Part shown: piece after piece, positions 1,262-33,878 of the stretch
How positions within the stretch are numbered: position 1 is the stretch's first letter
Layout of the letters: every line of letters starts with the position of its first letter
From: Dicyema japonicum
Lineage: Eukaryota; Animalia; Dicyemida
DNA length: 64,000 nt
Direction of reading: 5' to 3'
NCBI GenBank assembly: GCA_011109175.1
Contig: RDEW01000008.1
Location: 1,063,931-1,127,930 of the forward strand
Program-made: the position numbers and the translations under genes
The notes under the pieces: model-generated
Seen by the model: the letters and a program-made list of their open reading frames with translations, nothing else
The model's database searches: none
Told to the model about the DNA's origin: nothing

Positions 1262-2769
1262 TTAAATTAGTATGTTAATTAAAATCCATCCAAGTAGGAG
1301 GAATGATAATTCCACTGGACGAGAAACGGAGGAAGTACTGAATTTTCGGGCATGCGTGCTTACTATCAAATTAGAGTTAATTATTGAACTTGTTATGCTC
1401 AAATCTTCAAATAAAAATATTAAAATGATTAAATGTTNNNNNNNNNNNNNNNNNNNNNNNNNNNNNNNNNNNNNNNNNNNNNNNNNNNNNNNNNNNNNNN
1501 NNNNNNNNNNNNNNNNNNNNNNNNNNNNNNNNNNNNNNNNNNNNNNNNNNNNNNNNNNNNNNNNNNNNNNNNNNNNNNNNNNNNNNNNNNNNNNNNNNNN
1601 NNNNNNNNNNNNNNNNNNNNNNNNNNNNNNNNNNNNNNNNNNNNNNNNNNNNNNNNNNNNNNNNNNNNNNNNNNNNNNNNNNNNNNNNNNNNNNNNNNNN
1701 NNNNNNNNNNNNNNNNNNNNNNNNNNNNNNNNNNNNNNNNNNNNNNNNNNNNNNNNNNNNNNNNNNNNNNNNNNNNNNNNNNNNNNNNNNNNNNNNNNNN
1801 NNNNNNNNNNNNNNNNNNNNNNNNNNNNNNNNNNNNNNNNNNNNNNNNNNNNNNNNNNNNNNNNNNNNNNNNNNNNNNNNNNNNNNNNNNNNNNNNNNNN
1901 NNNNNNNNNNNNNNNNNNNNNNNNNNNNNNNNNNNNNNNNNNNNNNNNNNNNNNNNNNNNNNNNNNNNNNNNNNNNNNNNNNNNNNNNNNNNNNNNNNNN
2001 NNNNNNNNNNNNNNNNNNNNNNNNNNNNNNNNNNNNNNNNNNNNNNNNNNNNNNNNNNNNNNNNNNNNNNNNNNNNNNNNNNNNNNNNNNNNNNNNNNNN
2101 NNNNNNNNNNNNNNNNNNNNNNNNNNNNNNNNNNNNNNNNNNNNNNNNNNNNNNNNNNNNNNNNNNNNNNNNNNNNNNNNNNNNNNNNNNNNNNNNNNNN
2201 NNNNNNNNNNNNNNNNNNNNNNNNNNNNNNNNNNNNNNNNNNNNNNNNNNNNNNNNNNNNNNNNNNNNNNNNNNNNNNNNNNNNNNNNNNNNNNNNNNNN
2301 NNNNNNNNNNNNNNNNNNNNNNNAAAAAAAGTTTGATTAACTAATGCATCAGAATCACCAAAATGTGGTATCTATAATATAAAAATACCGACAACATTAA
2401 CATAAATATATTTTAGATTAATAAAACTAGAATCTATTTTCATGTCAAATCCAACAAGTATATTTTCAAATAGAAAATTGATGTAGAACTCATTATTTCT
2501 TCTATTCACAAATTTGACTTCTGTCTGTTTGAATTTAATATCTCGATTCTACTACTATGAAATTCACTTACGAATCTATTATGTTTAATCAATACGTAAA
2601 TCTCTCCAGAAAATAATATAGAAAATTTGTTATGTACGCGAATGATCCACATTGGAGCTTGATTTAATAACAGTTCATCAATAGTGATTTCAAGTAGAAT
2701 TAAGCCAAAAAACAACACAATTACTACAAAATTAATAAATTCAAACAAACCTTCAATTATAAAGATCAT
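1262..2769 (-). CDS. Surface glycoprotein family copy 1 (leader + LAMP-like domain + mucin stalk + GPI-like tail); middle lies in the assembly gap
   Basis: Removing three tiny GT-AG introns (~23-27 nt) gives an open frame MIFIIEVIVLFFGLILLEITIDELLLNQAPMWIIRVHNKFSILFSGEIYVLIKHNRFNRDIKFKQTEVKFVNRENNEFYINFLFENILVGFDMKIDSSFINLKYIYVNIPHFGDSDALVNQTF up to the gap. The last exon beyond the gap reads DLSITSSIINSNLIVSTHARKFSTSSVSRPVELSFLLLGWILINILI*. Homologous to copies at 8688, 16869 and 32749. Confidence 0.75.
1438..2323. other. Assembly gap (886 N)
   Basis: Run of N, located where the other copies carry the end of the head domain and the tandem mucin exon-intron repeats. Confidence 0.99.
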
Positions 2770-2853
2770 TAAGTTAAATAATTAATTATTCATGAATAAT
2801 TAATTATAAGAAATTAATATAATATAATAAATTTACTTAATAATTATTTTATC

Positions 2854-2921
2854 TCAAGGAGAGACTCTCGTTGGCTGTTGTCCGTGGGAATAGCTTGTGC
2901 ATCTCCCAACAGCTGAATTAA
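2854..2921 (+). mobile_element. Extremely 5'-truncated CRE-like non-LTR element with 56-bp target-site duplication
   Basis: Insert translates KERLSLAVVRGNSLCISQQLN*, matching the C-terminal motif of the CRE-like copies here (QKIGIAILRGNSFAI). Flanked by 2798-2853 and 2922-2977 (one mismatch). Absent from the other promoter copies. Confidence 0.75.
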
Positions 2922-3629
2922 AATTAATTATAAGAAATAAATATAATATAATAAATTTACTTAATAATTATTTTATCAAAATAATTTAAGTTATTAAAAA
3001 AAAGTTAAATATGTAACATATGAATTAATTTACCTAATTTATGATTAGATCTTCATTTTGGAATAATGTTATCGTGTCGTCATGTGGTTCACTTTTATGG
3101 TGGCGCTCGATGTCTAATAACAACAAAAAGAATTATTTTCTCTTCCTTATCCATACTTCTCGTATCTCTGGATGTTATACCTTAACAGAAACTCAAAATT
3201 TTATTTGTTCCCGTGGATTCTATTTCTTTCTGGAGATATTGCACATACCATAGACCAAATCCCTTTGTTATTGTGCATATCAATGCTACCAAAATAAAAA
3301 CAAAGATTTTGGATGTACGATGTCTATTATCGTAGCACAATTTTCATATTTGCCTTATCTAGGAGTCAAAACTTTTTACAAAGAATACAACCCCACTTTT
3401 CCTTGATACATCTCTATCAGAAAAGGCCGTATCGGACGTGGTGGCGGATTACTTCCTATTAATAAAAACGGTTTATCCTTCGACTATGTAAGCTCACAAG
3501 TAGATGATTTAATTTTACACGACAGGACCGCGGAACGAATTTCTATTGATCTTATTAATAGGTCAGAACATCTTTTTTTTAATCTACATTTACATTCCAC
3601 GGCAGTGATTCTATCCTAAGAGATCTTAT

Positions 3630-3860
3630 ACGTATGGTCCTGACGGTATTTCGGAAATTTTTCTTAAACACCTTGCTAATGTTGCAATCAATTCGAATAC
3701 GTCAATTTTTTATCTGTCTTCTAACAGAATGTCATCCTATGCAAATAGAACAACTCATTTATAATACCCCTTTTTAAAAACCAGGAAAACCGGAAACCTG
3801 ACCTTCTTCCTACTGTCCAAATTCATTGACATGCGAATTATTGGGCTTACTAAAAAAACT
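3630..3860 (+). mobile_element. Degenerate LINE reverse-transcriptase fragment
   Basis: Frameshifted GPDGIS..LKHL ... LKPGKP..PSSY.PISLT motifs. Confidence 0.65.
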
Positions 3861-4082
3861 CGTACTTTGTAAAATCAAACCCCATTTGCCGGCTGCCCTG
3901 ACTGCGTGGCTATTCCTTCTCAGGGTAGGGATCGAGATTCGCTCAAATAAACAGCAGATATATAAGAATTATTGATTTACGAACATTAATTACATATTCT
4001 TCATTAATAAAGTCTGTAGAAATGTAGAAATAGTACAAAGTCTAACTTTTAAAAACCTTTTAGTAAGGAAAAATGTCATCGG

Positions 4083-4343
4083 GAAAAAAGAAACAAAATT
4101 AATATACAAGAAACAGGAGATATAATTGCACTTACGGAAAAAACGGCAAATTTAGAGAATTTTGTGATTACTCATAAACCACAGAGATCTCATTAAAACT
4201 ATAATTTTTAAATAAAAATTTCTCTTAAATAATTCCTGTACGTGGTAATAACTTTTTGACTTCTGAAATAAAGGGCGATAAATGATTGAAAGGCGAAAAA
4301 ATAATTTGCGGAGGCAATTAGATAAAAAGGTTGAGAACCACTG
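4083..4343 (+). mobile_element. 3' end of hAT (Buster/Charlie-type) DNA transposon
   Basis: Transposase C-terminus KKRNKINIQETGDI.IALTEKTANLENFVITHKPQRSH*; terminal repeat AGGTTGAGAACCACTG at 4328-4343 (reverse complement CAGTGGTTCTCAACCT). Confidence 0.75.
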
Positions 4344-4349
4344 CCCTGG

Positions 4350-4987
4350 AGGATCAGATTCATGCTTCTTAAATATGCTGACGACATAATTATCGCTAGC
4401 ATAGCAAATAAGTGGATATGGCAAAATCAGAGCTTCAGTCACATATTGATGACCTATTATTTTGGAAGTGACTTTCGACCCTTTGATAACATTTTCTTAA
4501 CATGTGAAAAACGTTTTGACAAAGGGTCTTAGAAAACTGAATGTAATGAAATCGTTCTTAAAGTCCATGCCATCACGGTAATTCGCTGTTGTCTTGTATA
4601 ATTAACTTTTAAAATCGACGGTAGAGCATGCTAGTACCTCAGCTTATGGAGTATCAATATCCGATTTGTACAAGATCAATTCCTTAACATTCTAGTTGGT
4701 ACCTCTAACTAATCCACTTGCCGATCTCCCCATGCTTTAATCGAAAAAAACGTCTCCAACAAGTCGTTTCTTCCATTCAAGACTAGAAGCCTCAAATATA
4801 CGTAAATTGGCGAAAAACCCACCTCTCTTCAAATCTTAATGAACGGTGAACGCCATCGATACAGGAAAGCCGTGGGTACTATGGAGTAACATAAGAAAAA
4901 CTCTATTTTTTTGAACTGTACCAAGATAATTTAATAACTCGGTCTTTCTTGGTGTTCTCTACTCGAGGTTATTAAATAATAATAAAT
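4350..4987 (+). mobile_element. Degenerate LINE RT/3' end with TAA-rich tail
   Basis: LKYADDII motif near 4368-4391. Ends ctttcttggtgtt...ggttattaaataataataaat, the same end as the 10167-10271 insert. Confidence 0.65.
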
Positions 4988-5480
4988 CCCTATCTTACAC
5001 GACTCTTACACATCGTAAAATCAATAATTTTCAGTGAAACTCCAAAATATCAAAGTAAATTGAAAAATATATAATAAATTTGACATTCCGATAAGTTCTT
5101 CATGATTAAAAGTTACGTAATAAATTAATTAATCAAGGAATTATTTAATAAAACATTGAACATTCTTGCACGTTAATAATGAAGAAATAATAAGGTGAAA
5201 AAAAAACATACAAGACCACAAGAGGCAATTTTTTTTATCATTTCTTTATCTTTTCTTGTTTCACAAGAATTGCGTCATGTTATTCAAATATAATTTATTC
5301 AGTGTTTATCCACAGTATTTGTAGAATTGAGTATATCATCGAAGCCATCGTCTCATCCGACATGATGACTTTATAGATCTAAATTGAGGATACTTTATCC
5401 GCATCAAATTAGGCATGACGGCGAATCAACGAAAGTGATCTAAAGTCGTGGATTCAAAAGATTCTAAATAGTTCTTTACC

Positions 5481-7800
5481 GAATTAAAAAATCAACGATT
5501 TCGTATAATTTTAAAAATCGTAAAACCTGTTTTTTTCAATTATCTCTGCAACTTTAAATGAATAAAATAATCCAGAAACATTTTTTCAATATATTTTTAT
5601 TAAAACTAGAAATTAAATTGTTCTTATTTTCATAATTCTTTTTTAATTCAAAAAATTCTGTTTTTTTCCAATTGAGTTAAGATTTTAAGCTTAAAATGTT
5701 CGATTGAGAGCGATGGCTTCATCGCCTTATTGGAAAATACTATGTCACATTGCAAACAAAGCGGTTTATGAAGAGCTTTGAGGATTTTTTTATATATTTA
5801 AATGAAAGATATTTCTCTTTATTTGTTCTAATTTTATTAAACAAGACTCATTACGAAGTATTAAAAATCACGATTATAATTTTAAATAAATTATAATTAT
5901 TATTATCGAACCTGGACTACATTCCATATACATACAGTTCACCGAGTCTACAATAGGATACGCATGTAATGTCTGAGGTTCTAACTTTGCAGTAACGAAT
6001 TCGGACAAGATCAGCAACATTCAAGTGAAGGTAGTAGTTAAGGAGGCCGGAATCACCTGAATTTGTATATTTTGGATATGCTGTGGTTTTCTGGTTTAAT
6101 AATAATAATAATATAAATGAAATATAATATAATGCTATATATCTGCTGGTTATTTGAACGAATCTCAATTGCCATCCTGTGAGAATATAGCCACGAAGTC
6201 AAGGAAGCTTTTATATAACCGTTTACTCTCTAGTCTTTCTTTTTATCAAATGAAAATGAATAATATAAGACTCAAATATTTATTCGTCTTTAATTTTTCA
6301 CATGACAATTAGCTCTTTGAGGACCATCGCCTCCTTGTCAAAACAAAAAGTCGTCCAAAAGGAGCAATTCGCCCCTCGTTGAGACCTCTGCTCCAGGACA
6401 TGTTAAACCGTTCGTTTAGGAATAAATTGAATAGGACTGGAAAGATGGGCGATCCTTGATGGCCGCCATTTGGTAGAAGACGGTACTATCGTGTATGGCC
6501 TACAAAGACACGTCCTCTTCTTCCGGAAAGAAAATTAGCTATTCATCTTTTTAATATGGGAAGGCTATTTAGCATATTGTTTTAAAGTAATCTTCGAATG
6601 TCTTTGGTAGAGATTTGATCATGTATCGTCTATTTCAAAATCTTTTGTAGCTCTATTTGGGATTTTTTGAATTTTTTGGATGCTAAAAAAATGAGGCCCA
6701 GGAGAGGTTCCTGTAGTTCTAAGTAGTCCTGATATATTGATTGTAGATTATTAATAACGATTTCGAATTAAAAAATCAACGATTTCGTATAATTTTAAAA
6801 ATCGTAAAAACTGTTTTTGCAATTATCTCTGCAACTTTAAATGAATGAAATAATCCAGAAACATTTTTTCAATATATTTTTATTAAAACTAGAAATTAAA
6901 TTGTTCTTATTTTCATAATTCTTTTTTAATTCAAAAAATTCTGTTTTTTCTAATTGAGTTAAGATTTTAAGCTTAAAATGTTCGATTGAGAGCGATGGCT
7001 TCATCGCCTCATTGGAAAATACTATGTCACATTGCAAACAAAGCGGTGTATGAAGAGCCTTGAGGATTTTTTTATATATTTAAATGAAAGATATTTATCT
7101 TTATTGGTTCTAATTTTATTAAACAAGACTCATTACGAAGTATTAAAAATCACGATTATAATTTTAAATAAATTATAATTATTATTATCGAACCTGGACT
7201 ACATTCCATATACATACAGTTCACCGAGTCTACAATAGGATACGCATGTAATGTCTGAGGTTCTAACTTTGCAGTAACGAATTCGGACAAGATCAGCAAC
7301 ATTCAAGTGAAGGTAGTAGTTAAGGAGGCCGGAATCACCTGAATTTGTATATTTTGGATATGCTGGGTTTTCTGGTTTAATAATAATAATAAAAATAATA
7401 AATGAACTATAATATAATGTTATATATCTGCTGGTTATTTGAGCAAATCTCAATTGCCATCCTGTGAGAATATAGCCACGAAGTCATGGAAGACTTTATA
7501 TAACCGTTTACTCTCTAGTCTTTCTTTTTATCAAATGAAAATGATTAATATAAGAATCGAATATTTATCCGTCTTTAATTTTTCATTTGACAATGAGCTC
7601 CTTTAGGCCAAGAAGGGCAATTCGTCCTTGTAGACCACTGCTCCAGGACAGGTTAAAACGTTTAGGAATAAATTGAATAGCACTGGAGAGATGGGCGATC
7701 CTTGATGGACGCCATTTGGTAGAAGACGGGTCCTCGATCAGGCATAACCTACACATACACATCCTCTTCATCCGGAAAGAAAATTGGCTATCCATTTTTT
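5481..7800. repeat. Direct duplication ~1.05 kb (5481-6550 and 6765-7800) containing hAT BED-finger relic and LINE fragments
   Basis: Near-identical blocks offset 1284 nt. Minus strand CLQCDIVFSNEAMKPS is a Buster-type BED zinc-finger motif; LPNGVHQGSPISPVLFNLFL-like RT relic. Confidence 0.85.
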
Positions 7801-8687
7801 CAACCCGGCTGATTGGTGGTATCAAAACACTTTTTTGTGAGTAATGTTCTCGGGACATAATCGATCGCCTTCTAGATATCCAGAAAGACTAATTTTGTCC
7901 GTAAATTGCGTTTCGGTTAGTTTTACTATTCTGACATAAATGAGACAATTAAGTCAAATGTGTCGTAGTTGAACGCTCACATTTGAAACCATGTTAAAGT
8001 GACAGTCGAGCAAATGGGGTTTAATTTAACAGAGTCCAGTCGTCATGTCGCTGGAGTCCTGTCGTGTAGAATTAAATCATCCATTTGCGAGCTCACGTCG
8101 TGGAAGGATAACCGTTTTTAAAAAAGGTAAGTAATCCGTTACCACACCTAATACGTTCTTTTCTGATATAGATGTATCCAGGAAAAAGTGGGGTTGTATT
8201 CTTTGTAAAAGGTTTTGACACCTAGATAAATAAAATATTTATATTCTGCTTCGATAATAGACATCGTAAATCCAAAATCTTTGTTTTTATTCCGTAGCAT
8301 TGAGATGCATAATAACAAAGGGTTTCGGTCAATGGTATTGTTCAATATCTCCAGAAAGCAATAGAATCCACGTTAACAAACAAGAACTCTAGTTTCCAGT
8401 TAAGATATACCATCTAGACAAACGAGAAGTGTGGATGAGGAAGAGAAAATAAATCTTTTTGGTGTTATTCGACACTGAGCGCCACCATAAAAAATGAACC
8501 ACATGACGGCACGCTAACATTATAGCAAAATGAAGATCTCTCATAAATTAGGTTAATTAATTCATAATTTGCAAATTAAACCTTTTTTAATAACTTAATT
8601 TATTTTTATAAAATAATTATTAGATAATTAATTTTATTATAATAATTTTTATAATTAATTATTCATGAATAATTAATAATTTAACTA

Positions 8688-9787
8688 ATGATCTTTATGT
8701 TTGGAGGTTTGTTTGAATTTAATAATTTTGTAGAAATTGTGTTGTTTTTCGGTTTAATTCAACTTGAAATCACTACTGAACTGTTATTAAATCAAGTTCC
8801 AAAGTGGATCATTCGCGTACATAACAAATTTTCTATATTTGTTTCTGGGGAAATTTACGTATTGATTAAACATAAGAGATTCGTAAGTGAATTTCATAGT
8901 AGTAGAATCGGTTATTAAATTCAAATAGACAGAAGTCAAATTTGTAAATCGAAGAAATAATCAGTTCCACATCAATTTTCAATTTGAAAATATATTTGTT
9001 GGATTTGTCATGAAAAAGGATTCTTAATTTTATTAATCTAAAACAGATTTATGTTAATGTTTTCGGTATCTTGATATTTTAGATACCAGATTTTGGTGAT
9101 TTTGATGCATTAGTTAATCAAACTTTTTTGATTAAGAATTATTATTTTTGTCTCATTTTTAAATTGGACTATGTTAGAATTATTCTTTACATATTCAATT
9201 TACAACTACAAGTATCACAAACATCTGAAATTACATCATTTTCTGGAATCGGTTATATTTATAATAATTTTAAGCTGATTTTTGTAATAAAAATCTGTTG
9301 TGTAATGAACCTATTGAACAAAATAATCAATACTTTAAGTTGTTTTATTAATATTTATTTTCTTTTATTTTTTTATTATTTTTAGAAAACACAACGACTA
9401 TTTCCACAACTACAACTGAAAGTATATATATTTTAATTTCATATTTATAAATTCATGCATTCAAATAATATTTTTATTCATAGAAATGGCCACTACACTT
9501 ACTCCCACAAGTACATCTGAAGGTACAAAATCTTCAATTATTGATTAATCAATTCATATAGTGAAATGTTAGATTCATCCACAGAATTGGCCACTACACC
9601 TACTCCCACAAATACAACTGAAGGTAAAATATCTTCAATTAATGATTAATCAATTCATATACTTAAATGTTAGATTCACCCACAGAATTGGCCACTACAC
9701 ATTCTCCCACAAATAAAACTGAAGGTAAAATATCTTCAAATTATGATTAATAAATTCAAATGGATTTTAATTAACATACTAATTTAA
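8688..9787 (+). pseudogene. Surface glycoprotein family copy 2, disrupted
   Basis: Same exon structure, but indel and CAG>TAG in exon 3. A deletion near 9760 fuses a mucin intron to the last ~27 nt of the final exon. Confidence 0.7.
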
Positions 9788-10166
9788 ATTAAACTAACAG
9801 GTATCTTTGTTAAATTATTTTTTGACACTAATTTATTTATTTTTTAACCCATACACATAAAGAAAAACTTCAGTGATTAATAATCAATTAAGTTTATCCA
9901 ATGACCAAGTGTTAGTCGGAGATAGAGATGTGTTTCTAAACACATAACTCGTTCCAAAACCACACTGATAGACATTCTCCAAGAGATTATCTGTTGTCAT
10001 ATGAGAAATATGATCTATTTGATGTTTTTCTAAAATTGGAATTTTTGTTAACGAAGAAATGAATTGAAAAAAAGAATCAGTATAATAAATTGAAAGCTTG
10101 GTAAGTTGTTATTATGATGGTTTCATATTGAATAATATTAATTTTCAAATATTAGGTTGTATCTTA

Positions 10167-10271
10167 TTTATTTATTTATTTATTTAATAACCCCGAAAAG
10201 GGAACACCAAGAAAGAAGGAGTAATCCAACTTATTAAGTGATCCCGGTACGCCTCAACAGGATCGAGAGGT
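10167..10271 (-). mobile_element. Short 5'-truncated LINE 3' end with (TAAA)n tail
   Basis: TSD TTGTATCTTA at 10157-10166 and 10272-10281; the empty site is seen in the left arm near 860-870. Confidence 0.85.
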
Positions 10272-10421
10272 TTGTATCTTAAGCTGCCCAATTAGAACTT
10301 TGTGATCATATGACTTAATTTGTTTGTTTTGGAAATGAATTATCTCAATTCTATGAAATATTTCAAAGTAATTATGTTAATTTAATTAACGCAAACTAAA
10401 TAATTCCTAAAATATTTAAAT

Positions 10422-11404
10422 TTTTAAATATTTAAATTTTTAGGTACCTATCATCTCTCTCAAGCTGCAGTCATTTGACACGGCAAGTCCTTCATAACAC
10501 AATTGGACTTTGCTGGAATGAGTCATTTGACGAAGCTTGTCGGAAATGGAACGGGTCCGGACTCAAAATCCCAGAAGACACAACGAAGCAAAGAAATTGG
10601 GATGACATTGTCTGCTCCAAAATTTTGAAGGACCTTAAGAAAGAAGCAAATCAACATCGTCTGGCTTGTTTGGTGTCAGCTTCAAGTCGAGGGAGTGGAG
10701 CATGGCTTGGTGCAATACCTTGCCCAAACCTCGGGACCTTTTTGGACGACGATTCTTTGAGGATTGGAATCGGACAAAGGCTGGGACTAGACGTTTGCCA
10801 GGAGCACCGATGCCGATGCGGGAAAACAGTCGATGTGAAAGATTGCACCCGCTGTCCTGCAGAAGAAGCGCCGGAAGGGGACCACGTCATGCTGCTTTGA
10901 ATGATGTGATCGTCAGAGATCTGAAGGCTTCAGGCATCCCAGCACAGCTTGAACCAGTGGGTCTTGATCGAGGAGATGGGAAGAGACCTGACGGGATGAC
11001 CCTTTTCCCCTTCACGTCTGGAAGATCTTTGGTCTGGGACGCAACTTGCATAGACACGTTCTCAAGTACGAACATTTTTAAATCTGTTCAGAAAACCTGG
11101 AGCAGCTGCTTCGACCGCGGAAAACCTAAAAATCAAGAAATATTCTTGCCTCGGGGATCGCTACCGATTTACTCCTGTTGCGACCAAATCATCGGGAGCC
11201 GTTGGTCCAATGACGGCTGAATTCTTGCAAGAACTCGGAGGATTGCTTGCCAGAAAGAAAAGGGATCAACGAGAAGGGCTATGGCTAAGACAAAAGATTG
11301 GAATAGCCATACTCCGAGGGAACTCGTTCGCAATCCACGCAGCAGGCTTCCTCAACTGATATTTGTTTAATTGTTAAAAAAAATTTTTAATTAAAAAAAA
11401 TAAA
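10422..11404 (+). mobile_element. 5'-truncated CRE-like non-LTR retrotransposon (zinc motif + restriction-like endonuclease)
   Basis: [44 protein letters not shown] and RGNS motifs; A-rich tail; TSD AAAATATTTAAAT at 10409-10421 and 11405-11417; empty site near 715-730. Confidence 0.85.
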
Positions 11405-12075
11405 AAAATATTTAAATCACCCGTTTAAATCAAGATATCCTTAAATCAATAAAATGTCATGTGGCTCGCTGACTACGTGGTGGCATTTAGTAGAAAAAAA
11501 CCACAATTTCCCCTATCTTCAAGTGTGGACTAATAGATAAATCAATCAAACCTATTTTTGGCATTTATTTGATGCTAGTAGTTTACAGTAGAACTACGAC
11601 TTTAGTTACGGCTCATAAAAAAGACCGTTTTTATTTTCCATGAGAATTTAAAACAATTCACCTTTTTCTTATTATTTACTACAAAATTTAATTTATTTGT
11701 TGATTGACAATTACATATTTGCAGTAGTGTCTTTTTGACTATTCCTTTTTGAAGAGCGAGCTTAAAACACTCACTGTTTATGTAAAATACTTATATAAAA
11801 GTTCTTTGTCTATGTCCTCGTGAACGAATTGAAAAACTGGATCGTAAATTTCCAAAATGGACAGATAGGAGGGGTATTTCACGTTCTACAAAATCATCAC
11901 TAAGTTTTGCCTAACGGGCTCCTATTACGATCTCTTCTGTCACTTATCTTGTTCAAATCCTTTCTAAACGATATTCCACCTATATATTTTTCGATATACT
12001 GAATGATATATTCATCAGGAGACCTGTGTGGTCACATTAATGCTGATCGCTTAGATAATATATTTGACCTTTCGA

Positions 12076-12640
12076 AAAAGTCATACTTTTTTTCTCTCCA
12101 CCTCCACAGTATACAAACGGTCTTGAGACGTAATGACATTTTCTATGATGTGAACTAGGCCAGACTCTTCATAGTGTACCACAAAATCATGTTCATTGCT
12201 TGACTAGCATAGAGTGTCATAGTAATTGGCATAACGCTATCACTTTTAATAACCCACCATCATCAACAACATACTTAGCGAACACAAAAGGTTTGAATGT
12301 GCCTAGGTGAGTGGGCCTTGTTTTCTCGGTCGTTGTTATGGCGTGCTTCCTAGCAGACACACTAGACCCAGCTATCAAGGTCTCATGCATTTGCATAAGA
12401 ATTCGCTTCACCTTGTTGGACTACTCCTAATTGGCTGCCAGCACATAGACATAATACTCCACGAATCATAAAATCATTTTATAGTACTTTTTGGCTCAAA
12501 ATCAACAACACCTATGTAGTAGTTTAGAACCGTAATAGCATACTCATTTAATGCTAGGACAACTTCCGTGCATGTCTTACATAATAGCGTTGCTATTCTA
12601 CTAATGTCTTTAGTTACTTATCGCTTTATCTCATGGACTC
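12076..12640 (-). mobile_element. Degenerate R4/Dong-like non-LTR RT fragment
   Basis: Homologous to 30230-30960, which keeps the YKYLG and RL.L.R..GR motifs. Confidence 0.6.
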
Positions 12641-14045: not shown

Positions 14046-14084
14046 TGTGCTTGAAACTGAAACGAATCATAATGAATTTTAGCA

Positions 14085-15949: not shown

Positions 15950-16613
15950 ATATAAGTTTTTTTAACAATTAAACAAATGTCAGTTCAGGAAGCCTGCTGC
16001 GTGGATTGCAAACGAGTTCCCTCGGAGTATGGCTATTCCAATCTTTTGTCTTAGCCATAACCCTTCTCGTTGATCTCTTTTCTTTCTGGCAAGCAGTCCT
16101 CCGAGTTTTCGCAAGAACTCAGCCGTCATTGGACCAACGGTCCCGATGATTCGGTCGCAACAGGAGTAAATCGGTAGCAATCCCCGAGGCAAAATATTTC
16201 TTGATTTTTAGGTTCTCCGCAGTCGAAGCAGCTGCTCCAGGTGTCTGAACCGATTTGAAAATATTCGTGCTTGAGAACGTGTCTACACAAGTTGCGTCCC
16301 AGACCAAAGATCCTCCAGACGTGAAGGGGAAAAGGGTCATCCCGTCAGGTCTCTTCCCATCTCCTCGATTAAGACCCACTAGTTAAACTGTGCTGGGAAG
16401 CCTGTAGCCTTCAGAGCTCTGACAATCACATCGTTCAAAGCAGCATGACGTGGTCCCCTTCCGGCGCTTCTTCTGCAGGACAGCGGGTGCAATCCTTTCA
16501 CATCGACTGTTTTCCCGCATCGGCATCGGTGCTCCTGGCAAACGTCTAGTCCCAGCCGTTGTCTGATTCCAACCTTCAAAGAATCGTCGTCCAATTAGGT
16601 CCCGTCCAAAAAG
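15950..16613 (-). mobile_element. 5'-truncated CRE-like element inserted upstream of copy 3
   Basis: ORFs 15980-16594 nearly identical to 10422-11404; interrupts the conserved upstream sequence; 145-bp tandem duplication at its 5' junction (16576-16720 / 16721-16867). Confidence 0.85.
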
Positions 16614-16868
16614 GTTAAGTTTTAATAACTTAATTTATTTTTATAAAATAATTATTAAATTAATTAATTTATTATAATAATTTTTTATAATTAATATTCA
16701 TGAATAATTAATTATTTAACTCAAAGAATCGTCGTCCAATTACGTCCTGTCAAAAAGGTTAAGTTTTAATAACTTAATTTATTTTTATAAAGTAATTATT
16801 AAATTAATTAATTTTATTATAATAATTTTTTATAATTAATTATTCATGAATAATTAATTATTTAACTT

Positions 16869-18485
16869 ATGATCTTTATGTTTGGAAGTTTGTTTGAATT
16901 TAATAATTTTGTAGAAATTTTGTTGTTTTTCGGATTAATTCAACTTGAAATCACTATTGATGAATTGTTATTAAATTCAGTTCCAATGTGGATCATTCGC
17001 GTATATGAAAAATATTCTATATTATTTTCTGGAGATATTTACTTATCGATTAACATTATGAATTAGTAAGTGAATATCAAAGTAGTAGAATCGAGTTATC
17101 AAATTCAACCAGACAGTCAAATTTGTGAAACGAAGAAATAATGAGTTTCTATCAAATTTCAATTTGAAAATACACTTGTTGAATTTGTCATGAAAAAGAA
17201 TTCAAGTATTATTAATCTAAAACAGATTTATGTTAATGTTGTCGGTATCTTGATATTATAGATACCGTATATTTGTGAGTCTTATGCATTAGTTGATCAA
17301 ACTTTTTTGATTAGCAATTATTATGATTGTCCTATTTTTAAATTGGACTATCTTGGAATTATTCTTTACATTTTCAATTTAAAACTACAAGTATCTCAAA
17401 CATCTGGAATTACATCATTTTCTGAAACCTGTTGTATTTATTATAATTTTAAGTTATAATTGCAGTAATGACTTGTTATGTGATGAACCTAGTGAACTAA
17501 TAATCGGTACTTTAAGTTGTTTTATTAATATTTATTTTCTTTTATTTTTTATTATTTTTAGATAACACAACAACTACTTCTACGACTAAACCTGAAGGTA
17601 AATATCTTCAATTAATGATTAATCAATTCATATACGTAAATTTAGATTCACCCACAGAATTGGCCACTACACCTTCTCCCACAAATACAACTGAAAGTAA
17701 AATTTCTTCAATTAATGATTAATCAATCATATAATTAAATGTTAGATTCACCAACAGATTGACCACCACACTAACTCCCACAAGTACAACTGAAGGTACA
17801 ATATCTTCAATTAATGATTAATCAATTCATATACTTAAATGTTAGATTCAACCACAGAACTGACCACCGAATCTACTCTCACAAACAACTGAAAGTACAA
17901 TATCATCAATTAATGATTAATCAATTCATATACTTAAATGTTAGATTCACTTACAAAACTGACCACCACATCTACTCTCACAATTACAACTGAAGGTACA
18001 TTTTCTTCAATTAATGATTAATCAATCATATAATTAAATGTTAGATTCAACCACAGAATTGACCACCACATCTACTCCCACAAGTACAACTAAAGGTACA
18101 ATATCTTCAATTAATGATTAATCAATCATATACTTAAATGTTAGATTCATTCACAGAATTGGCCGCTACACCTACTCCACAAGTACAAATGTAGGTAAAA
18201 AATTTTAATTAACATTTAATCAATTCATACACTTAAATGTTAGATTCACCCACAGAATTGGCCACTACAACGACTCCACGACTATAATTGAAAGTAAAAT
18301 GTTTTAATTCAACATTTAATCAAGTTTATTATTTTAATTTAAGATTCGAGCTTAACAAGTTCAACAATAAACTCTAATTGATAGTAAGCATGCATGCCCG
18401 AAAATTCAGTACTTCCTCCGTTTCTCGTCCATTGGAATTATCATTCCTCCTACTTGGATGGATTTTAATTAACATACTAATTTAA
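16869..18485 (+). CDS. Surface glycoprotein family copy 3 with 7 mucin repeat exons (small indels: pseudogene or assembly error)
   Basis: Same tiny-intron structure; repeat exons such as DSPTELATTPSPTNTTE; hydrophobic terminal exon ending LLGWILINILI*. Confidence 0.65.
17598..18345 (+). repeat. Tandem ~100-bp exon+intron repeat (7 units)
   Basis: Intron gtaaaatatcttcaattaatgattaatcaattcatatacttaaatgttag alternates with a ~51-nt Thr-rich exon. Confidence 0.9.
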
Positions 18486-18660
18486 ATTACACTAACAGAT
18501 ATATTTGTTAAATTATTTTCTGAGACTAATTTATTAATTATTTAACCCAGGACACATAAAGTAAGTAGTCGGTGATTACCTGTTGTCATATTAGAAATGT
18601 AATCTATTTAATGTCTCCTGAATTTGTACTTCATGGTAACAAAGAAATGAATTGAGAAGA

Positions 18661-21845: not shown

Positions 21846-21849
21846 ATCT

Positions 21850-22899: not shown

Positions 22900-23560
22900 G
22901 ACAAATTAAGTTAATGAAAGCCATATTAACCATGTCAAGATAAATATTCATCCAATGGGCCCCCAACTACTTCACTCATCGTCCTCTAATGGATTTCTTT
23001 GTGGTCAAATAGTGACGATGATCTATTCATTTATTTCATTTGCACTTTCATCTTCATAAAAGACGCAGTTACTTCTTCCTCTTTTTTGACTTATAGCTTT
23101 CCAAAATAATAATCCCTTCATTGCCGAGAAGGGTCTAAGTGTTTGGCTGTACTTCATAAACAAGATATAGTCAGACGTTCGAGATGTACAGTAGGACATG
23201 TGTGGTTGATAACTCCTTGAAACATCGCCATAAATTTATCATCTGCATAAACTTGAACAGTATGTATGGATCATTGAAGTATGGAATATCGGATAAAAAC
23301 AAATTTAATAATAAAGTGAACAGTGGATGTCTTTGAGGAACATTGTTCGGTAAGAAGCGAGATATTGATAACGTACTCTCCGGCGTCGCACGGAAAAATT
23401 GTTATCTTAGTATTATATCGGATTCGAATGTCTTTTGAATATCACTACAAATCCGAGATGTGTCACAGTAAAGCGACCCGGTTTGTAGTCGTATTGGAAG
23501 GAAGATGACAAAAGATCTGGGAAAATAATTTTTAAAACAAGCTTTGTGCATGTGAGAAAG
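22900..23560 (-). mobile_element. Degenerate LINE RT relic (duplicate 40420-41060)
   Basis: In the duplicate: DIQKTF, LPNGVPQ, LLNLFLSDIP, VQVYADD. Confidence 0.65.
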
Positions 23561-26500: not shown

Positions 26501-29500
26501 TAATTTATAAGACACTATTGGATGACAACGCTATGAGGATTGGGGTTTTCCGTCCGTTTCAAAAATAGATATTGCACGATCCATCGCTGTAGATGCGGAG
26601 GAATGGTCGAGGATAAAGTTTATCGAGGTTTCCCAATGGACGGTGACATAATTTATATTTATTTTGACGATGACTGCCATTTTATGAGGTTATTTTTAAA
26701 ATTATTAAAGATTTTTAATTTTCAAAGAATTTGAATTATATCTAAATATTGTGCATTATGATTTTTTTTAAAAAACAAAACTGCCCAAATATAATATCTA
26801 TTCATTGCATTTACATAGGCACAGTCAATAAAGATATTTATTACGGCGTGGTCTCCCTTATGACTTGCAGGCATTGAGTACACAATCGGAGTTACCACAC
26901 ATGATCGAAGCCCAATGTTCTGGAAGAGCCAATTTATCATTCTGGGCTCTCCCTTTTGCAGTTTTGCAAGCTGCTCGATTAACTGATTAACTCAGACTTG
27001 CTCGGTCCAAAAACGCGAGAAGTCTCAACGGATATCGCTTGGAATGCGAACAGAATTGGAAGAACTAGACACGAGCCTAAACATCGTTCAAAATGAGAAA
27101 ATTAACAGGTTTCTTAGCTGTAAAATAGAAGTCCAATTTGAGGGTATGAAGTTGCTTGGATCGCTATTGAGTTCCCTGAGTATTTGCTGCAACATAGCCT
27201 CGCCTTAGAAGATTCTATTGTGGGACAGTTTTCCAACAATTCCCTGACGAATTAATGAATAATGTGGTTGAAGCAAATTCACTATGGTCAGGGATTCTTT
27301 TCTTCTGCCTTTAATTGTGACTAAATGCCTAATACGACTGTAATACAGTCTTGACCCCCTAAATACGAATTATCCACCTTGATCACGTCAAGATTGAAGA
27401 ACTTGTGAGCTGTTACACAGTTGTTGTATTATATGACAATTTATTATTCTTAATCATGTTTTTTGCTTTTAATTGTTATTTTACTCGAATTTTGAAATTA
27501 CAGAGGGGAAGCGGGAAAATTTAGTTGGATAAGTCGCATTAACTCTAAATTACCAAATGCAAAACCAATGAGCAAAGCCATCGACCACAGGTAAAAAAAC
27601 TGGAATCCTATTCAAGGTCATTTTCGCCGATTATACTGACCATCAAGCGAACTCGACGTTGGGCTTTTATAAACAATAGTTGCTCCGACCATCGAATACG
27701 CCTATTCCGCCTGGTTCAGATCCTTTGGAAAAGCACTCTGTCAGCCATCCGAAAATTGTTGAAAAGAATTAAGTACCTGACGAAGGAGAAAGACAAAATA
27801 GTTACTTCTGACATCCCTAGTTCTATACAAGAGAAACAATGGAGACCACAGTACTAATAGGTCTAGTAGAAATCTACAAGCAAAAGCCTGCGACTCTGTT
27901 TCGAGGTCGCACCTGACAGGCGCTAAAGAAGTCATGGTAAAGGAATTCCGAAAGTGAATTTTTTTGAAGGCTATTGGACAGAAAAGCCCTATCCCTCTTG
28001 TGACGTGTAGCAGTAGTTTTTATCATCAAATAACCGATTATCGAATACGCTTCTTCCACATGAAGATTAGCGTTTTCTCTTCGAAAAATGAACATATCAA
28101 CTCACTTAAAGGAAAATCTTGCATCTTTTTCCCTCATACAAAGGCCATCTCTTGAAGGTATCCGTGCATGTAAAGTCCTGGACCATAGACTTACCGACTT
28201 CAAACGGAAAGATGAAGATCCCATTTTTAAATTTTTCATAACTCCCACACAAGCAAAGAGGAATAACCATTTATAGTCGTCTGATGGCCTTATGTCTAGA
28301 ACTTCCACTACTCCTACAGGCGAGTGATGAATACAATAACCGTTGATCTGGTCATTTACTCGCCACGATGTGGTACAAAATCAAGACCTAATGAAAATAT
28401 CAAATTAACATAAAATAGCCAAATTTCAAAGTCATTAAACTTTTAATTAATGTTTTTTACCTTTTCTAACTTTGTCTCTTCTAAAGCGGACCGATATTCT
28501 CTAACTTGCCACTATTATCATAAAGATCACTTTTACATTTTTCTGAGCCCATTTATGGAAAATTAACTTTGTAGTAAGATCTTTTATCCCTCGTTATTTT
28601 AATCAGATTTCACTAAGTTTCGACCTTACATTAAATTGTAAACCCTAAAATCGTAAACATGGACAAAATAAAAGGCCATTAACAAGTACGCCTCAAGATA
28701 AGTCGTTTAAGAGTTAATCAGCTTCCAAGCCGAGTCATAGCCAGCTTGGGCAAGCAAAGAGATCTCGAACTTCTCTTCACTCAAGATTGACTATATCCAC
28801 ACCGTAGATGTGCGAGTCTCACTTTGACGGTAATTGGAGCAGCTATTCTGAATCCCTCCTTGTATGGCGGTAGAAAAAACTTTCAAAATTTAATGACACG
28901 TGACTTATCAATTGTTAGTAATGAAATGCTATTTATCACAATTTTTAACTAAAAAATGTCTCCGAGGAATACGGAGATATCCTTTCCCCACAACGGTCTG
29001 GGCTCACTTAGTTAGGTGAAAACATTTTCTTTTATAGAAGTAAAGTATATCAAGTAGAGTAAATACCAGTGACTGACGGGCAGTTTATCTTCTTCTAACC
29101 GTCTTTTATTAAAACGTCTGAAGTGTTTGACGTCAGGAATATGGAATCCGTCAAACAATCGTCGACCTGCAGAAACACTTAAGAGTGAACCCAGATATAC
29201 GTAAATGCTCTTCCAAATACATTGGCCTCTCAATCATGAGAAATCATATTTCCCATAATTCTTGAGCAATAGACTGTCTGTTTCTTCTTAAATGAAGAAG
29301 TTAGACACATCATAGCGGGACTTTTTGTCACCAGACCCTTTTGGGTAAACCATATGTGGATAATACATAGGAATGCAGTCCCAAGTCCGTTAGGTAAACC
29401 TTATATGGATAATACATAGGAAACAGGATACTATGTCGCATTTAATATAACATTAATTACTTTCTTGTATTTTTCTTTGACTAATTTAGTGGGAAGACAA

Positions 29501-30229
29501 CTTGTTTACATCAGAAAAATATTTGTACGATAATTTCGATTATTTATTTATTTTTTAAATAATTATTTTTTAAATAATTTTTATTATATATCTTGTCAAG
29601 AAGATTCTAACTCGCTCGCTGAATTCTCTACTAACCTGGACGCGGCCATGCTCGTGAGACCTTCAGCTTTCCCACGTTCTCTCAGTGGTGCCTGGACGAT
29701 GCTGTATGGCTGAATTCTTTTGAAGATCCCTAGTGTCATCTAACCAACATTACCGTGCCTGTTTGTTGTCAGGGGCATCTTCCGATTTTCCATGAGAATT
29801 TAAAACAATTCACCTTTTTATTATTATTTACTACAAAATTTAATTTATTTGTTGATTGACTATAACATCTTTGCAGTATTGTCTTTTTGACTTTTCCGTT
29901 TTGAAGAGCGAGCTTAGAAACACTCACTGTTTAGGTAAGATATTTAAAAAGAACTTCTTTGTTTATGTCTTCGTGAACAATTTGAAGAACTGGATTGTAA
30001 TTTACCTATGTGGAAAAAGAAAAGAAGTATTTCACGTTCTACAAAATCATCACTAAGTTTTGCCTAACGTGCTCCTATTAGGATCTCTTCTGTCACTTAT
30101 CTTGTTCAACTTTTTTCTGTACGATATTCCACCTATATATTTTACGATATACTGAATGATATAATCATCAGGAGACCTGTGTGGTCACATTAATGCTGAT
30201 AGCTTAGATAATTTATTAGACATTTCGAA

Positions 30230-30960
30230 AAAGTCATACTTTTTTTCTCTCCACCTCCACATTATACAAACGGTCTTGAGACGTAATGCCATCTTTCATG
30301 ATAAAAACTTGGCCAGAATCCTTATCGTGTACCACAATATCAGGTTCATAGTGAGTTGCATAACGCCTTCACATTTACTAGCCCACCATCATCAACACCA
30401 TACTTAGCAGACAAATAAGGTCTATAGTGCCTAGGTGGGTTGCCCGTGTTTTCTCGGTCGTTATTATGGCGTGCTTCCTAGCAGCCACACTTGACCCTCC
30501 TAACAGCGTCAAATGCATTTGCATAAGAATACGCTCACGTTTTTATAATACTCCACACAGTCTACGGCCGAATTTATCACGGAATAAATTTAGTCTCTCT
30601 TTACTGGCTGCCAGCATATGGACATGGTTCTCTCTGAGTACTCCACGGATCATAACATCCATCTCATCATACTCCTTTTGCTCAAACTCCACAACACCTA
30701 TGTAATAGTTTAGCAGCAAGACAGAATACTCATTTAATGCTAGGAACAAATTCCTTGCATTTAGAGACGTCTTACATAATAACGCTGCTCTTTTACAAAT
30801 GCCTTCAGTAATTTGTCGCTTTGTCTCAGGTGTTATAAGGGACTTTGGAGTTTCGGTAACACCCAGATACTTATATCCTTCGTGTTCCTCTAGGACTTTT
30901 CGTAACACCAGATACTTATATCCTTCGTGTTCCTCTTTAGTTACTTGTCGATTTATCTCA
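30230..30960 (-). mobile_element. R4/Dong-like non-LTR RT C-terminal fragment
   Basis: EGYKYLGVTE..CKTSLNARNLFLALNEY..LNYYIGVV..ASKERL.L.R..GR. Confidence 0.7.
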
Positions 30961-31199
30961 GGGACTCAATTGAAATCTGTCGATAAAAAATCCATTCAGA
31001 TTCAAAATTGAAATATTGAGGATACTTTTTTATTAAAAAATAAATAACTGAACAAATAAAAAAATAATCAAAAATTTGAACTAAAAGCACGAGATATTAA
31101 CTTCCGACCAATTTCAAGCTAAATATTATAAAAATTTAGGATATCCATTCAAAAGCAGTAAATTTACTGGTAAAATATACGGCTTTAAAAGTTTTCCTA

Positions 31200-32598
31200 A
31201 GTGGGCAGCGATAATTTCCGCCACTTCCCTCTGGTCCACAATTTGCGTTCTTTTGTCATCTTTTATAATTATCGGTTGATGGGGTCTTTCCCTTCATCTG
31301 TTTCACAGCCTCGTAGAATCTAGCGTTGTCTTTGAGAGATTCTATCTTCTTAATCTGGTCCAGTGCTCTATTTCTGTTTTGCTGGCGCATAGTTTTTCTT
31401 ATTTTTGCTTTGATAGTTATTCTTTCTAGCCTCAATTTTGATTTTACGTTCGAATCGTCAGTATTTTGATATAGCATCCATATGGTCTTCTGTTTATTGG
31501 CAAGGTCCTTCACCGTGTACATGTCATTGTGCGATGGGATTTTCTCATTTTCTTTCATTAGATGAAGATTGGCTTTTTTATGTATTGATTTCTTTACAAA
31601 ATCCCAGGATTTTCCGAGCGGCAAATCTGTAGGCATGTATTCTAGTTCTGCATCCAGATATTCTCTGAATGCTAGGGCCCCTTCTGATTGACTGATTAAG
31701 GATTCCAAGTTATAACGTCTATAGCTGGGTTCTGTGGTTTCAATGTGCTTCCATTTCGTTCTTTGTAGTACCATAAATCTCTTAAGAGAAAGTCTAGCGA
31801 AAACCATTTTGTGGTCGCTGTCGCTAATTGATCCACCATAAGCTCGTGCATAAGTATAATCCCTCGATCTTTTTGCCTGCATATGATATAGTCGATCTGG
31901 TTGTATATATTTATCACTCACACTTCGAGATTTGTTCTGTGTCCCGACCACGTAGATTTATGTCTGGCTGGATGCATGAAGGTGTATTGCATAAAAATAG
32001 GTTGTTCATTTGACAGAAGTTAGCTAGTAGAGTTCCCGGGGAATTTCTTTTCTCCCTACCATGCCTTCCCAAGAATGTCTCATCGGTCGTAACCTGGGTG
32101 CCATTTTTCGCATTTAGGTTTCCTGCAATCATTACTAATGTCGAGAAAGCATACTTGGAAAAGACTGGTGTAAAAGTCATCAATCTCCCCAGGGTTTTTA
32201 TTAAGCCATCCACTGTGAAGGGCGTAAACGTTTATTATAGTTAGATATTTCTTCGACGGGTTGAGGTCATCCAGTTTCAATTGCAACACCCCGATTCTAT
32301 CATTCACACTGTAATATCGGCAGACTCTTTTGGATAGATCATTCCTGACGGCAAATCCTAGCCCATAGAGCTTGTTTCTACCTGGAAGGAAGATTAGTCG
32401 AAAGTTCTCATGTTGTTCTTTGATCCCGTTGATTAGTTTAATCTCCTGAAGGCAGGCGATTGAAATCATGTATTTTGTTAGATCCTCGACCAGTTCCTTC
32501 CGGTTCCGAACGCTAGAAAGTCCCCTGACGTTAAACGTGAAAAAGGAGAGTCCAATAGCTTGATACTGTGTTTTCCAGACATTGAGTTCAAGAGCCAC
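31200..32598 (-). mobile_element. RTE-like LINE 5' part (AP endonuclease)
   Basis: TFNVRGL, IACLQE, GLGFAV, INVYA, NQIDYII, SDSDHKMV. Confidence 0.8.
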
Positions 32599-32748
32599 GT
32601 TAAATTAGGTTAATTAATTCATAATTTACATATAAAACTTATTTTAATAACTTAATTTATTTTTATAAGTTAAGTTATTAAATTAATTAATTTTATTATA
32701 ATAATTTTTTAAAATTACTTATTCATAAATAATTAATTATTTTACTTA

Positions 32749-33878
32749 ATGATCTTTATGATTGGAGGTTTGTTTGAATTTAATAAGTTTGTAGAAATTG
32801 TGTTGTTTTTCGGTTTAATTAAACTTGAAATCACTATTGATAAAGTGTCAAATAGTCAAATTCCAATGTGGATCATTAGTGTAAATGACGAATTTTCTAT
32901 TTTATTTTCTGGAGAGATTAACGTGAGGATTACAGATAATGGAATGGTAAATGAATATGATAGTAGTAGGATCGAGTTGTCAATTTCAACGAGACAGTTG
33001 TCGGTTATGAGAATCTAGGAAATAATGAATTCTATATCAATTTACAAGTTGGAATTACACTTGTTAGTTTTAAATTGAAAATGGATGATAATCTTAATTA
33101 TTTAAATCTAATTTATGTTATGGTTGTCGGTATCTTGACATTATAGATACGGGGAATTGGTAGTTCTTCTATTAATATTAATGAAATATTTTTGATTAGA
33201 AATTATTATTATTGTCATAATTTAAAGATAGAATTTCCTCCATTTATTTTACACATTCTACTTTAAACTACAAGTATCTCGAACACCTGGAATTACATCA
33301 TTTTCTGAAACCTGTTGTATTTATTATAATTTTAAGTTGATAATTGCAGTAATGATCTGTTAAATAATGAACCTATTGAACCAATAATCGGTCCTTTAAG
33401 TTGTTTTATTAATATTTATCATCTTTTATTTTTTTATTTATTTTTAGGACACACTACAGCTACTTCCACTACTACAAGTGAAGGTAAATATTTTAATTTC
33501 ATGTTTATAAATTAATGCAATTAAATAATATTCTTATTCATAAAATTGATAACTACAGCTACTCCCACAAATACAGCTGAAGGTAAAATATCTTCAATTT
33601 ATGATTAATCAATTCATATAATTAAATGTTAGATTCACCCACAGAATTTGCCACTACAACTACTTCCACTACTACAATTGAAGGTAAAATATTTTAATTC
33701 CCTATTTAATCAATTTATATCATTTTTATTTTAAGATCCGAGCATAACAAGTTCAACAATTAACACTAATTTGATAGTAAGCATGCATGCCCGAAAATTC
33801 AGTACTTCATCCGTTTCTCGTCCAGTGGAAGTAACATTCTTCCTACTTGGATGGATTTTAGTTAACATACTAATTTAA
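32749..33878 (+). CDS. Surface glycoprotein family copy 4, divergent head, short stalk (one frameshift near 33258)
   Basis: Spliced: MIFMIGEIVLFFGLIKLEITIDKVSNSQIPMWIISVNDEFSILFSGEINVRITDNGMDRVVNFNETVVGYENLGNNEFYINLQVGITLVSFKLKMDDNLNYLNLIYVMIRGIGSSSININEIFLIRNYYYCHNLKIEFPPFILHI[fs]KLQVSRTPGITSFSETFDNCSNDLLNNEPIEPIIGHTTATSTTTSE...DPSITSSTINTNLIVSMHARKFSTSSVSRPVEVTFFLLGWILVNILI*. Confidence 0.75.

Follow-up and report, generated by a model that had tools for sequence, protein, structure and literature searches.

LAMP-domain proteins belong to the type I membrane proteins found in lysosomes and in organelles related to them. Members of the LAMP family (PF01299) carry a beta-prism domain of 150-200 amino acids with two fully conserved disulfides per domain, an adjacent transmembrane (TM) helix with a conserved Pro and Gly, and a short cytosolic sorting tail of the Y-x-x-hydrophobic type (PMC3409847). 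Here we consider a gene family of the dicyemid Dicyema japonicum that appears to be a derivative of these proteins. Four of its copies, called A to D below, lie in a window of 64,000 nucleotides (nt) on scaffold C356 (C356:1063931-1127930); positions given without a scaffold are those of the window.

D. japonicum is a parasite of cephalopod renal sacs and uses the standard genetic code; dicyemids feed by endocytosis via their outer cells and are bathed in host urine. The 377 scaffolds of the published assembly add up to 67.5 Mb; GC content is 36.7%, repeats make up 49% and introns average 38 bp (PMC6736024), and introns shorter than 30 bp were confirmed in this species by a 2026 study (PMC13644364). 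LAMP is absent from the genome paper, and a literature search gave no link between dicyemids and LAMP.

A candidate LAMP-derived surface family

What kind of protein do these genes encode? We consider it fairly probable that they form a lineage-specific family descended from LAMP/CD68-type lysosomal membrane glycoproteins, the products of which would be a lipid-anchored, O-glycosylated surface coat. The window sits in a cluster of about 86 kb on C356. An intact member would possess a hydrophobic leader and a LAMP-like, beta-rich head of about 150 amino acids, split by three 23-nt introns, which would keep only the second LAMP disulfide; the head would be followed by a short stretch left over from the beginning of the TM helix. 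Next would come a Thr/Ser/Pro stalk, its length set by the number of tandem exon-plus-intron units, and a tail exon ending in a sequence that resembles a glycosylphosphatidylinositol (GPI) signal.

The 3' part of the LAMP gene, with the TM helix and the sorting tail, would thus have been replaced by the stalk exons and a new tail exon. From this replacement no lysosomal sorting would be expected, and the most likely destination would be the outside of the cell, where the protein would sit as a lipid-anchored and O-glycosylated coat. The family would have evolved by tandem duplication, fast exon change and frequent decay. A first reading of the window, made from the letters alone and called the sequence-only reading below, had described the same architecture of leader, head, C-terminal mucin stalk and hydrophobic end without a cytoplasmic tail, and this description stands.

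Gene structure and reading frames

The head is interrupted by three GT-AG introns of 23 or 24 nt each. In the loci L001 (C356), L004 (scaffold C1) and L007 (C17), the head is open only after removal of three 23-nt GT-AG introns, which stand at the same aligned positions in all three. L007 then reads from ATG to stop through 263 codons (introns of 23, 23, 23, 59 and 46 nt) and L004 through 236 codons (23, 23, 23 and 49 nt); L001 has an intact head. Intron 4 measures about 56-59 nt; in the stalk, introns have about 46-59 nt, apart from one of 75 nt in copy D. The 23-27 nt that the sequence-only reading gave for the introns is thus close for the head, where they have 23-24 nt, but not for intron 4 and the stalk.

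The frames of L004 and L007 are kept by selection, since simulated copies at 60% DNA identity almost never stay stop-free: when 20-40% divergence was simulated with substitutions alone, no more than 0.04% of copies did so. Joined exons were used for the frame checks, the substitution counts and the decay simulation, and the searches and folds took the unjoined pieces. We infer splicing from the conserved GT-AG sites, their conserved length and phase, and the restoration of the frame. Read-derived contigs were colinear with the genome and contained no intron-sized GT-AG joints; the runs were DNA-like, and a search for RNA runs returned none.

A ciliate code, in which TAA and TAG encode Gln, was considered on account of a TAG in the in-frame intron 2. 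It was rejected, as the standard code gives restored frames once the 23-nt introns are removed.

The Thr/Ser/Pro stalk is built of tandem units that recur every 99-101 nt. A unit consists of an exon of about 51 nt and an intron of about 48-50 nt and encodes around 17 Thr/Ser/Pro-rich residues, so that the stalk has the tandem Thr/Ser/Pro-rich repeats of a mucin. There are 3.5 units in copy B, 7.1 in copy C and 2.7 in copy D, and many more in L001.

Relationship of the head to the LAMP domain

Descent of the head from a LAMP domain, as the sequence-only reading proposed, is well supported by the combined sequence comparisons and structural models: a profile match to an oyster LAMP, introns shared with a canonical LAMP/CD68-type gene of Dicyema, and the predicted fold of a paralogue.

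Two single-exon matches to PF01299 come from different members of the family and are colinear. Exon 2 of L007 matches positions 56-89 (E=0.054, 13.8 bits) and exon 3 of L008 positions 114-146 (E=0.0039, 17.5 bits); in both cases it is the only Pfam match. Other pieces gave scattered chance matches to unrelated families (E=0.03-0.15). Taken singly, each of the two exon matches would lie near the noise, and it is their agreement that appears to count.

Among 1.84 billion representative proteins, the alignment of the exon-3 profile (A3) found three matches. One is a protein of the oyster Saccostrea (P0003; E=8.7e-4 for the whole library), which itself carries PF01299 at E=1e-28; A3 aligns to it at the C-terminal Y-x-C ... 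K-V-Q motif of one LAMP domain. The same motif is found when A3 is compared with five oyster LAMPs by hhalign (P=7e-4). The other two matches, a repeat protein and a bacterial F5/8 type C protein, are probably compositional.

Gene structure provides a second line of evidence. L021 (C1:1193700-1196700, minus strand) is a canonical LAMP/CD68-type gene. It encodes a leader and an N-terminal Thr-rich mucin, then a single luminal domain and a TM helix, and its tail ends in N-Y-E-P-L-I. Its luminal exon matches A3 (P=1.2e-4), and L021 shares two intron positions and phases with the family, one of phase 0 after the second strand and one of phase 1 before x-D-C. In both, Pro-Ile stands nine residues past that Cys: in L021 it begins the TM helix (L-I-P-I-L-V-G), and in the family exon 4 ends in P-I-E-P-I-I-G and is followed by intron 4 and the stalk. 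The luminal exon of L021 has no PF01299 match, so Pfam is evidently insensitive in this lineage, and L021 lacks the first disulfide pair as well.

The 3' end of a second LAMP/CD68-type gene lies just upstream of L021, with a tail ending in S-Y-E-E-V-N. The TM pieces of the two genes match PF21222, the Pfam family of LAMP TM helices (E=5e-6 for L021 and 6e-4 for the second gene).

A third line of evidence comes from a second LAMP-like subfamily of Dicyema, with at least 30 loci (L023-L052), for example on C10, C34, C35, C44, C48 and C326. These genes have few introns and encode G-Y-Y-N-C ... M-K-M-Q ... F-T-G-N-G, a short stalk and a TM helix of about 23 hydrophobic residues followed by K-R-R-R-R. 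The family profiles of exon 1 and of exons 3/4 match this TM-bearing subfamily colinearly in hhalign (E=1.2e-6 and 4.6e-9, respectively); the exon-2 profile does so weakly (E=0.047). Sites of the second subfamily include C326:267800-270000, C48:35200-37400 and C35:1154500-1175000.

Because the domain of the window family is split by frame-shifting introns, the paralogue L024 of the second subfamily was folded in its place; here the whole domain lies in one open reading frame (ORF), with two in-frame 24-nt introns read through. The AlphaFold model, made from an alignment of 44 Dicyema rows and no real LAMPs, is all-beta (predicted local distance difference test, pLDDT, 57; predicted TM-score 0.50). 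Among 350,542 chains, Foldseek ranked LAMP-3 (twice) and LAMP-1 first to third, with probabilities of 0.98, 0.97 and 0.75 and E-values of only 0.03-0.05. VIA-align gave LAMP-2 at Z 7.6 (137 residues, root-mean-square deviation 3.6), LAMP-3 at Z 7.1 and LAMP-1 at Z 6.8, in matches that span 137-142 residues. Two V-ATPase chains, 9cfc_U and 7uzf_c, followed at Z 6.9 and 6.7 over 132-133 residues, and the next match after these five reached only Z 4.7. We take the V-ATPase chains to be the LAMP-like luminal domain of ATP6AP1 (Ac45). A first, poorer model (pLDDT 49.6) gave the same Foldseek top three and no clear match in a wide VIA search. The modelled matches stand clear, cover the whole domain and fall on the family predicted beforehand, with none appearing decisive singly. 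The LAMP fold that the sequence-only reading expected of the head is the best match of a paralogue, to which the window family is tied by the hhalign matches.

Several results weigh against this descent. Every Pfam score, obtained on single exons, lies below the PF01299 gathering score of 27.2 bits. Two non-LAMP proteins outscore the LAMP match of A3, which shows that composition biases this profile. Against the oyster LAMPs, the exon-1 and exon-2 profiles were not significant, and the exon-3 and exon-2 profiles found no LAMP among the PDB sequences. The computed fold belongs to a paralogue, its model is of middling confidence, and Z values below 8 would not be decisive alone. A six-frame PF01299 scan of the whole genome gave nothing at the family loci. 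In the ESM Atlas, a feature search with a piece of L005 pointed weakly, with low recognition, to VOMI clusters, and a shape search gave generic beta sandwiches only (TM-score <0.5).

Could the likeness to LAMP be convergence or chance, without homology, in a beta-rich, lineage-specific domain of AT-rich sequence? The weak scores (13.8-17.5 bits in Pfam, 35 bits in the large search), the missing first LAMP disulfide, the silent exon-1 and exon-2 profiles and the VOMI look-alikes of the language model would all fit. It is nevertheless very improbable, since several independent weak signals agree, colinearly, on one family, and LAMP-fold chains fill the top five structural matches by a clear 2 Z units. 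Moreover, the two shared intron positions and phases connect the family to a gene with a LAMP-type TM helix and a Y-x-x-hydrophobic tail, and the failure of its luminal exon to match PF01299 deprives low Pfam scores of much of their meaning.

The only conserved Cys residues are those of the second LAMP pair (Y-x-C of exon 3 and the Cys of exon 4), with none in exons 1-2, so that one of the two LAMP disulfides is kept. The TM helix and the sorting tail are missing, with only a P-I-x-P-I-I-G remnant at the end of exon 4. The family therefore fails strict LAMP membership, yet by gene structure and fold it is a LAMP derivative. It was missed by six-frame and Pfam scans because of its 23-nt introns and extreme divergence, and provides a clean example of genes that such scans overlook.

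The C-terminus and membrane attachment

Eight copies with 57-92% exon DNA identity have the same tail: R-K-x-x-T-S-S, a polar spacer of 6-7 residues, 15 uncharged hydrophobic residues (mean Kyte-Doolittle hydropathy 2.3-2.9 in the eight copies) and the stop. The unspliced frame of the tail is taken as coding because distant copies show synonymous differences. In a C-terminal GPI signal, the residues where cleavage occurs are small, a polar spacer 5-10 residues long comes next, and 10-20 hydrophobic residues run to the end. The tail conforms to this rule of thumb with S-T-S-S, its spacer of 6-7 residues and 15 uncharged residues up to the stop. It seems too short for a membrane helix plus a cytoplasmic tail, and a GPI anchor is plausible from its sequence; anchoring and surface location would both follow from this. 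At the other end of the protein, the putative leader has an 11-residue hydrophobic window at positions 14-25 (mean Kyte-Doolittle 2.6-2.7), with a Glu inside it in the cluster copies.

Does the LAMP-derived head instead end in a different way, as a short tailless single-pass anchor, by secretion or through a further exon? We hold this to be unlikely, though not far-fetched. The machinery of GPI attachment, the transamidase, was found only in part, which weighs in favour of such another ending: a Peptidase C13, which could be legumain, is over its cut-off (31.3 bits), Gaa1 is weak and under its cut-off (25.5 bits), and PIG-T was not found in an exon-wise scan that is insensitive in so divergent a genome. 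In addition, most copies have a branch-point-like motif and an AG about 15 nt past the stop, and there is a GT 18 nt before the stop. However, distant copies agree at the protein level in the last six codons ahead of the stop, L008 is without the AG, and reading past the putative 31-nt splice would add a variable 2 amino acids in copy A, 3 in L007 and 15 in copy D. The 15 hydrophobic residues are also short for a membrane helix and are followed by no basic stop-transfer residues, unlike the longer helix and basic end of the TM-type paralogues. The GPI-type end remains the preferred reading of the tail.

Two further introns were considered for this region. A 31-nt intron across the stop was judged unlikely because the reading that would follow it is not conserved. 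A 26-nt intron inside the tail exon was rejected, as its length varies among copies and the unspliced frame is conserved with synonymous changes.

Just past the stop, at 33879-33895 in copy D and at the same place in all other copies, lies the strongly conserved motif T-T-T-A-A-A-C-T-A-A-C-A-G-A-T-A. It has the look of a branch point with an acceptor, or of a 3'-end signal, and is kept even at 60% exon identity.

The four copies in the window

The sequence-only reading placed four copies of the family in the window, and self-blastn of the window confirms four paralogous copies at those places, with 80-90% DNA identity including introns and flanks. Their similarity blocks in this self-comparison are as follows.

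1147-2860, minus strand: copy A, interrupted by the gap 1438-2323
8544-9900, plus strand: copy B
16764-18578, plus strand: copy C
32601-34000, plus strand: copy D

Pairwise DNA identity is 85% over 1168 nt for B and C, 80% for B and D and 81% for C and D, and the heads of B and A are 90.5% identical over 529 nt. The start codons lie at 2769 (A, minus strand), 8688 (B), 16869 (C) and 32749 (D), and the stop codons at 1262 (A, minus strand), 9787 (B), 18485 (C) and 33878 (D).

In copy A, exons 1-2 and the tail are open, and head and tail stand in the right order and on the right strand. The gap takes away the greater part of exon 3, then exon 4 and the stalk; at 886 nt, it has room for about 5-6 stalk units.

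1262-2769, minus strand: copy A, open as far as readable, exon 3 mostly in the assembly gap
2572-2769, minus strand: exon 1
2549-2571, minus strand: intron 1
2396-2548, minus strand: exon 2
2372-2395, minus strand: intron 2
2324-2371, minus strand: start of exon 3, then assembly gap 1438-2323
about 1405 to 1262, minus strand: tail exon, stop at 1262

Copies B and C are dead pseudogenes, with no open path to the tail in either under the homologous splice model. In B, exon 2 has a frameshift and an in-frame TAG, and the tail exon is mostly deleted. C has at least three frameshifts, with 1-nt deletions in exon 1, in exon 2 and ahead of exon 4.

8688-9787, plus strand: copy B, pseudogene
8688-8882, plus strand: exon 1 of B, intact
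9083-9250, plus strand: exon 3 of B, in frame, second Cys region altered
9404-9758, plus strand: stalk units of B
16869-18485, plus strand: copy C, pseudogene
17262-17429, plus strand: exon 3 of C
17592-18300, plus strand: stalk of C, 7 units, with frameshifts here too
ending at 18485, plus strand: tail exon of C, intact

Copy D is probably alive. It is open except in exon 3, where the assembly lacks 2 nt behind 33247 and the frame is broken. The sole read-derived contig over this place (703 nt, about 98% identical) has TA there, which restores the frame; it is D-like where the paralogues differ, and the TA is present in three runs of one sample. The break is therefore likely to be an assembly error or one allele.

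32749-32946, plus strand: exon 1, hydrophobic leader and first head strands, 66 codons
32947-32969, plus strand: intron 1, 23 nt, GT-AG, phase 0, at a position common to L021 and the TM-type paralogues
32970-33122, plus strand: exon 2, 51 codons
33123-33146, plus strand: intron 2, 24 nt, in frame, with a TAG inside
33147-33313, plus strand: exon 3, with the Y-x-C ... L-Q-V ... F-S-E-T motif
33314-33336, plus strand: intron 3, 23 nt, phase 1, directly before the x-D-N-C codons, at the same position and phase as the L021 intron
33337-33390, plus strand: exon 4, second Cys, then P-I-E-P-I-I-G, the apparent remnant of the LAMP TM-helix start
33391-33447, plus strand: intron 4
33448-33483, 33559-33582 and 33633-33683, plus strand: three Thr-rich stalk exons, in a block with introns of 33391-33735
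33736-33878, plus strand: tail exon, with polar spacer, T-S-S, 15 hydrophobic residues and stop, GPI-signal-like

That four loci encode the protein, as the sequence-only reading had it, is thus overstated: four copies exist, of which two are pseudogenes, one is cut by a gap and one hinges on a disputed 2-nt indel. The head motif NYYYC...LQV...FSETFDNCSND that it ascribed to each locus does not hold either, the string being a composite of several copies, with B and C frameshifted.

Repeats of 82-89% identity also take in the flanks of the genes (64-730, 11405-12076 and 29785-30229; also 790-1434 against 33704-34327), so the duplication unit is larger than the gene. Directly upstream of copy C, a 144-nt tandem duplication at 16576-16867 (2.0 copies, 95% identical) doubles the 5' flank. 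Copy D is adjoined by ORFs at 32080-32598 and 31256-31951, both on the minus strand. The first has a weak endonuclease/exonuclease/phosphatase match (E=2.5e-4), as in long interspersed nuclear elements (LINEs), which fits the repeat-rich setting.

Extent and evolution of the family

How large is the family? A count of paralogues across the genome had been proposed as a check on the sequence-only reading. In the 67,542,437 bases searched, in 377 pieces, DNA comparison gave 15 matches, eight of them in the cluster on C356 and the rest on C1, C2, C17 and C89; with the exon-3 profile, the number of places is at least 52. Further members, on C19, C35, C135, C362 and C372, came from protein and profile searches. 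The two LAMP-like subfamilies together account for roughly 1% of the genome's 5,000 or so genes.

C135 (8600-160000) holds a divergent sub-cluster of at least six loci (L011-L018), with V-Y-Q-C ... M-K-I-Q-I in exon 3.

Whichever two copies are compared, the exons are less conserved than the introns and than the 48 nt upstream of the start; between D and C, for example, identity is 78% in exons and 94% in introns. The ratio of nonsynonymous to synonymous substitution (dN/dS, Nei-Gojobori) is 0.7-1.8. Taken with the preserved frames and motifs, this would fit a fast, perhaps diversifying, change of the head. Constraint on such tiny introns could explain part of the contrast between exons and introns.

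Is the whole GPI-type family dead and unexpressed, a set of LAMP-like relics carried along by segmental duplications in a repeat-rich region? L002, L003, L005 and L006 are broken as well as B and C, flanks have been duplicated along with the genes, LINE-like ORFs adjoin them and dN/dS is near 1. Such a state of the whole family is improbable all the same. L004 and L007, whose DNA is 60% identical to that of the cluster copies, retain complete frames and every splice site, and simulated neutral copies almost never remain open. Synonymous changes accompany the conservation of the Cys, the Trp, the Q motif and the tail, and conservation of the introns and the 48-nt upstream region above the exons is likewise hard to reconcile with a family of relics.

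A living, LAMP-derived family with frequent decay is thus the reading that we retain, with some reservations. Its splicing and expression are deduced from the genome sequence, three of the four copies in the window are either broken or cannot be read through in the assembly, and a dN/dS of 0.7-1.8 would by itself also fit neutral decay.

What might the proteins do? A role as a surface coat or antigen is a reasonable inference from the architecture of the genes. The sequence-only reading went on to a variant surface antigen or adhesin, which is speculation; the data show only fast exon divergence and preserved frames in the intact copies. The most far-reaching version is a LAMP domain turned outward: a GPI-anchored LAMP-mucin variant coat at the host interface, with a reservoir of pseudogenes, diversifying heads, a stalk length tuned through duplication of entire exon-plus-intron units, and an expansion to more than 50 LAMP-like loci. 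We put this forward tentatively, as a doubtful but conceivable extension. If a LAMP-derived surface coat exists, it bears on how dicyemids protect or present their outer surface.

Comparison with known systems

The closest relatives by sequence motif and predicted fold are LAMP-1, LAMP-2 and LAMP-3. Like the family, they have a beta-rich domain of about 150 amino acids in which Y-x-C is followed, after some 20 residues, by a hydrophobic-Q-hydrophobic strand and F, with the second Cys about 37-38 residues past the first and Pro-Ile 9-10 residues past the second Cys; they are also the best structural matches of the L024 model. Unlike them, the family falls below the Pfam cut-off, lacks the first disulfide, the TM helix and the sorting motif, and has a mucin stalk between domain and membrane and a GPI-like end. 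To our knowledge, there is no description of a LAMP version in which a membrane-proximal mucin stalk is combined with a GPI-type end.

CD68 (macrosialin) resembles the family in combining one LAMP domain with a mucin-like Thr/Ser/Pro region, and L021 is the CD68-like gene of Dicyema. In the family, by contrast, the mucin forms a stalk on the C-terminal side of the domain, and neither TM helix nor tail is left. ATP6AP1 (Ac45) is connected through the V-ATPase chains that match the L024 model, presuming that we have identified these correctly; no sequence link to it was found, and it has a TM helix inside the Vo sector.

The GPI-anchored mucin coats of parasites, such as the trypanosome mucins, offer an analogy in possible function rather than in descent. 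They too combine a leader, a Thr-rich stalk for O-glycosylation and a GPI-type end, and their genes would be comparable in forming tandem clusters with many pseudogenes, fast-changing exposed parts and variable numbers of repeats. Their sequences and folds are unrelated to those of the Dicyema family, in which the exposed head is of LAMP type.

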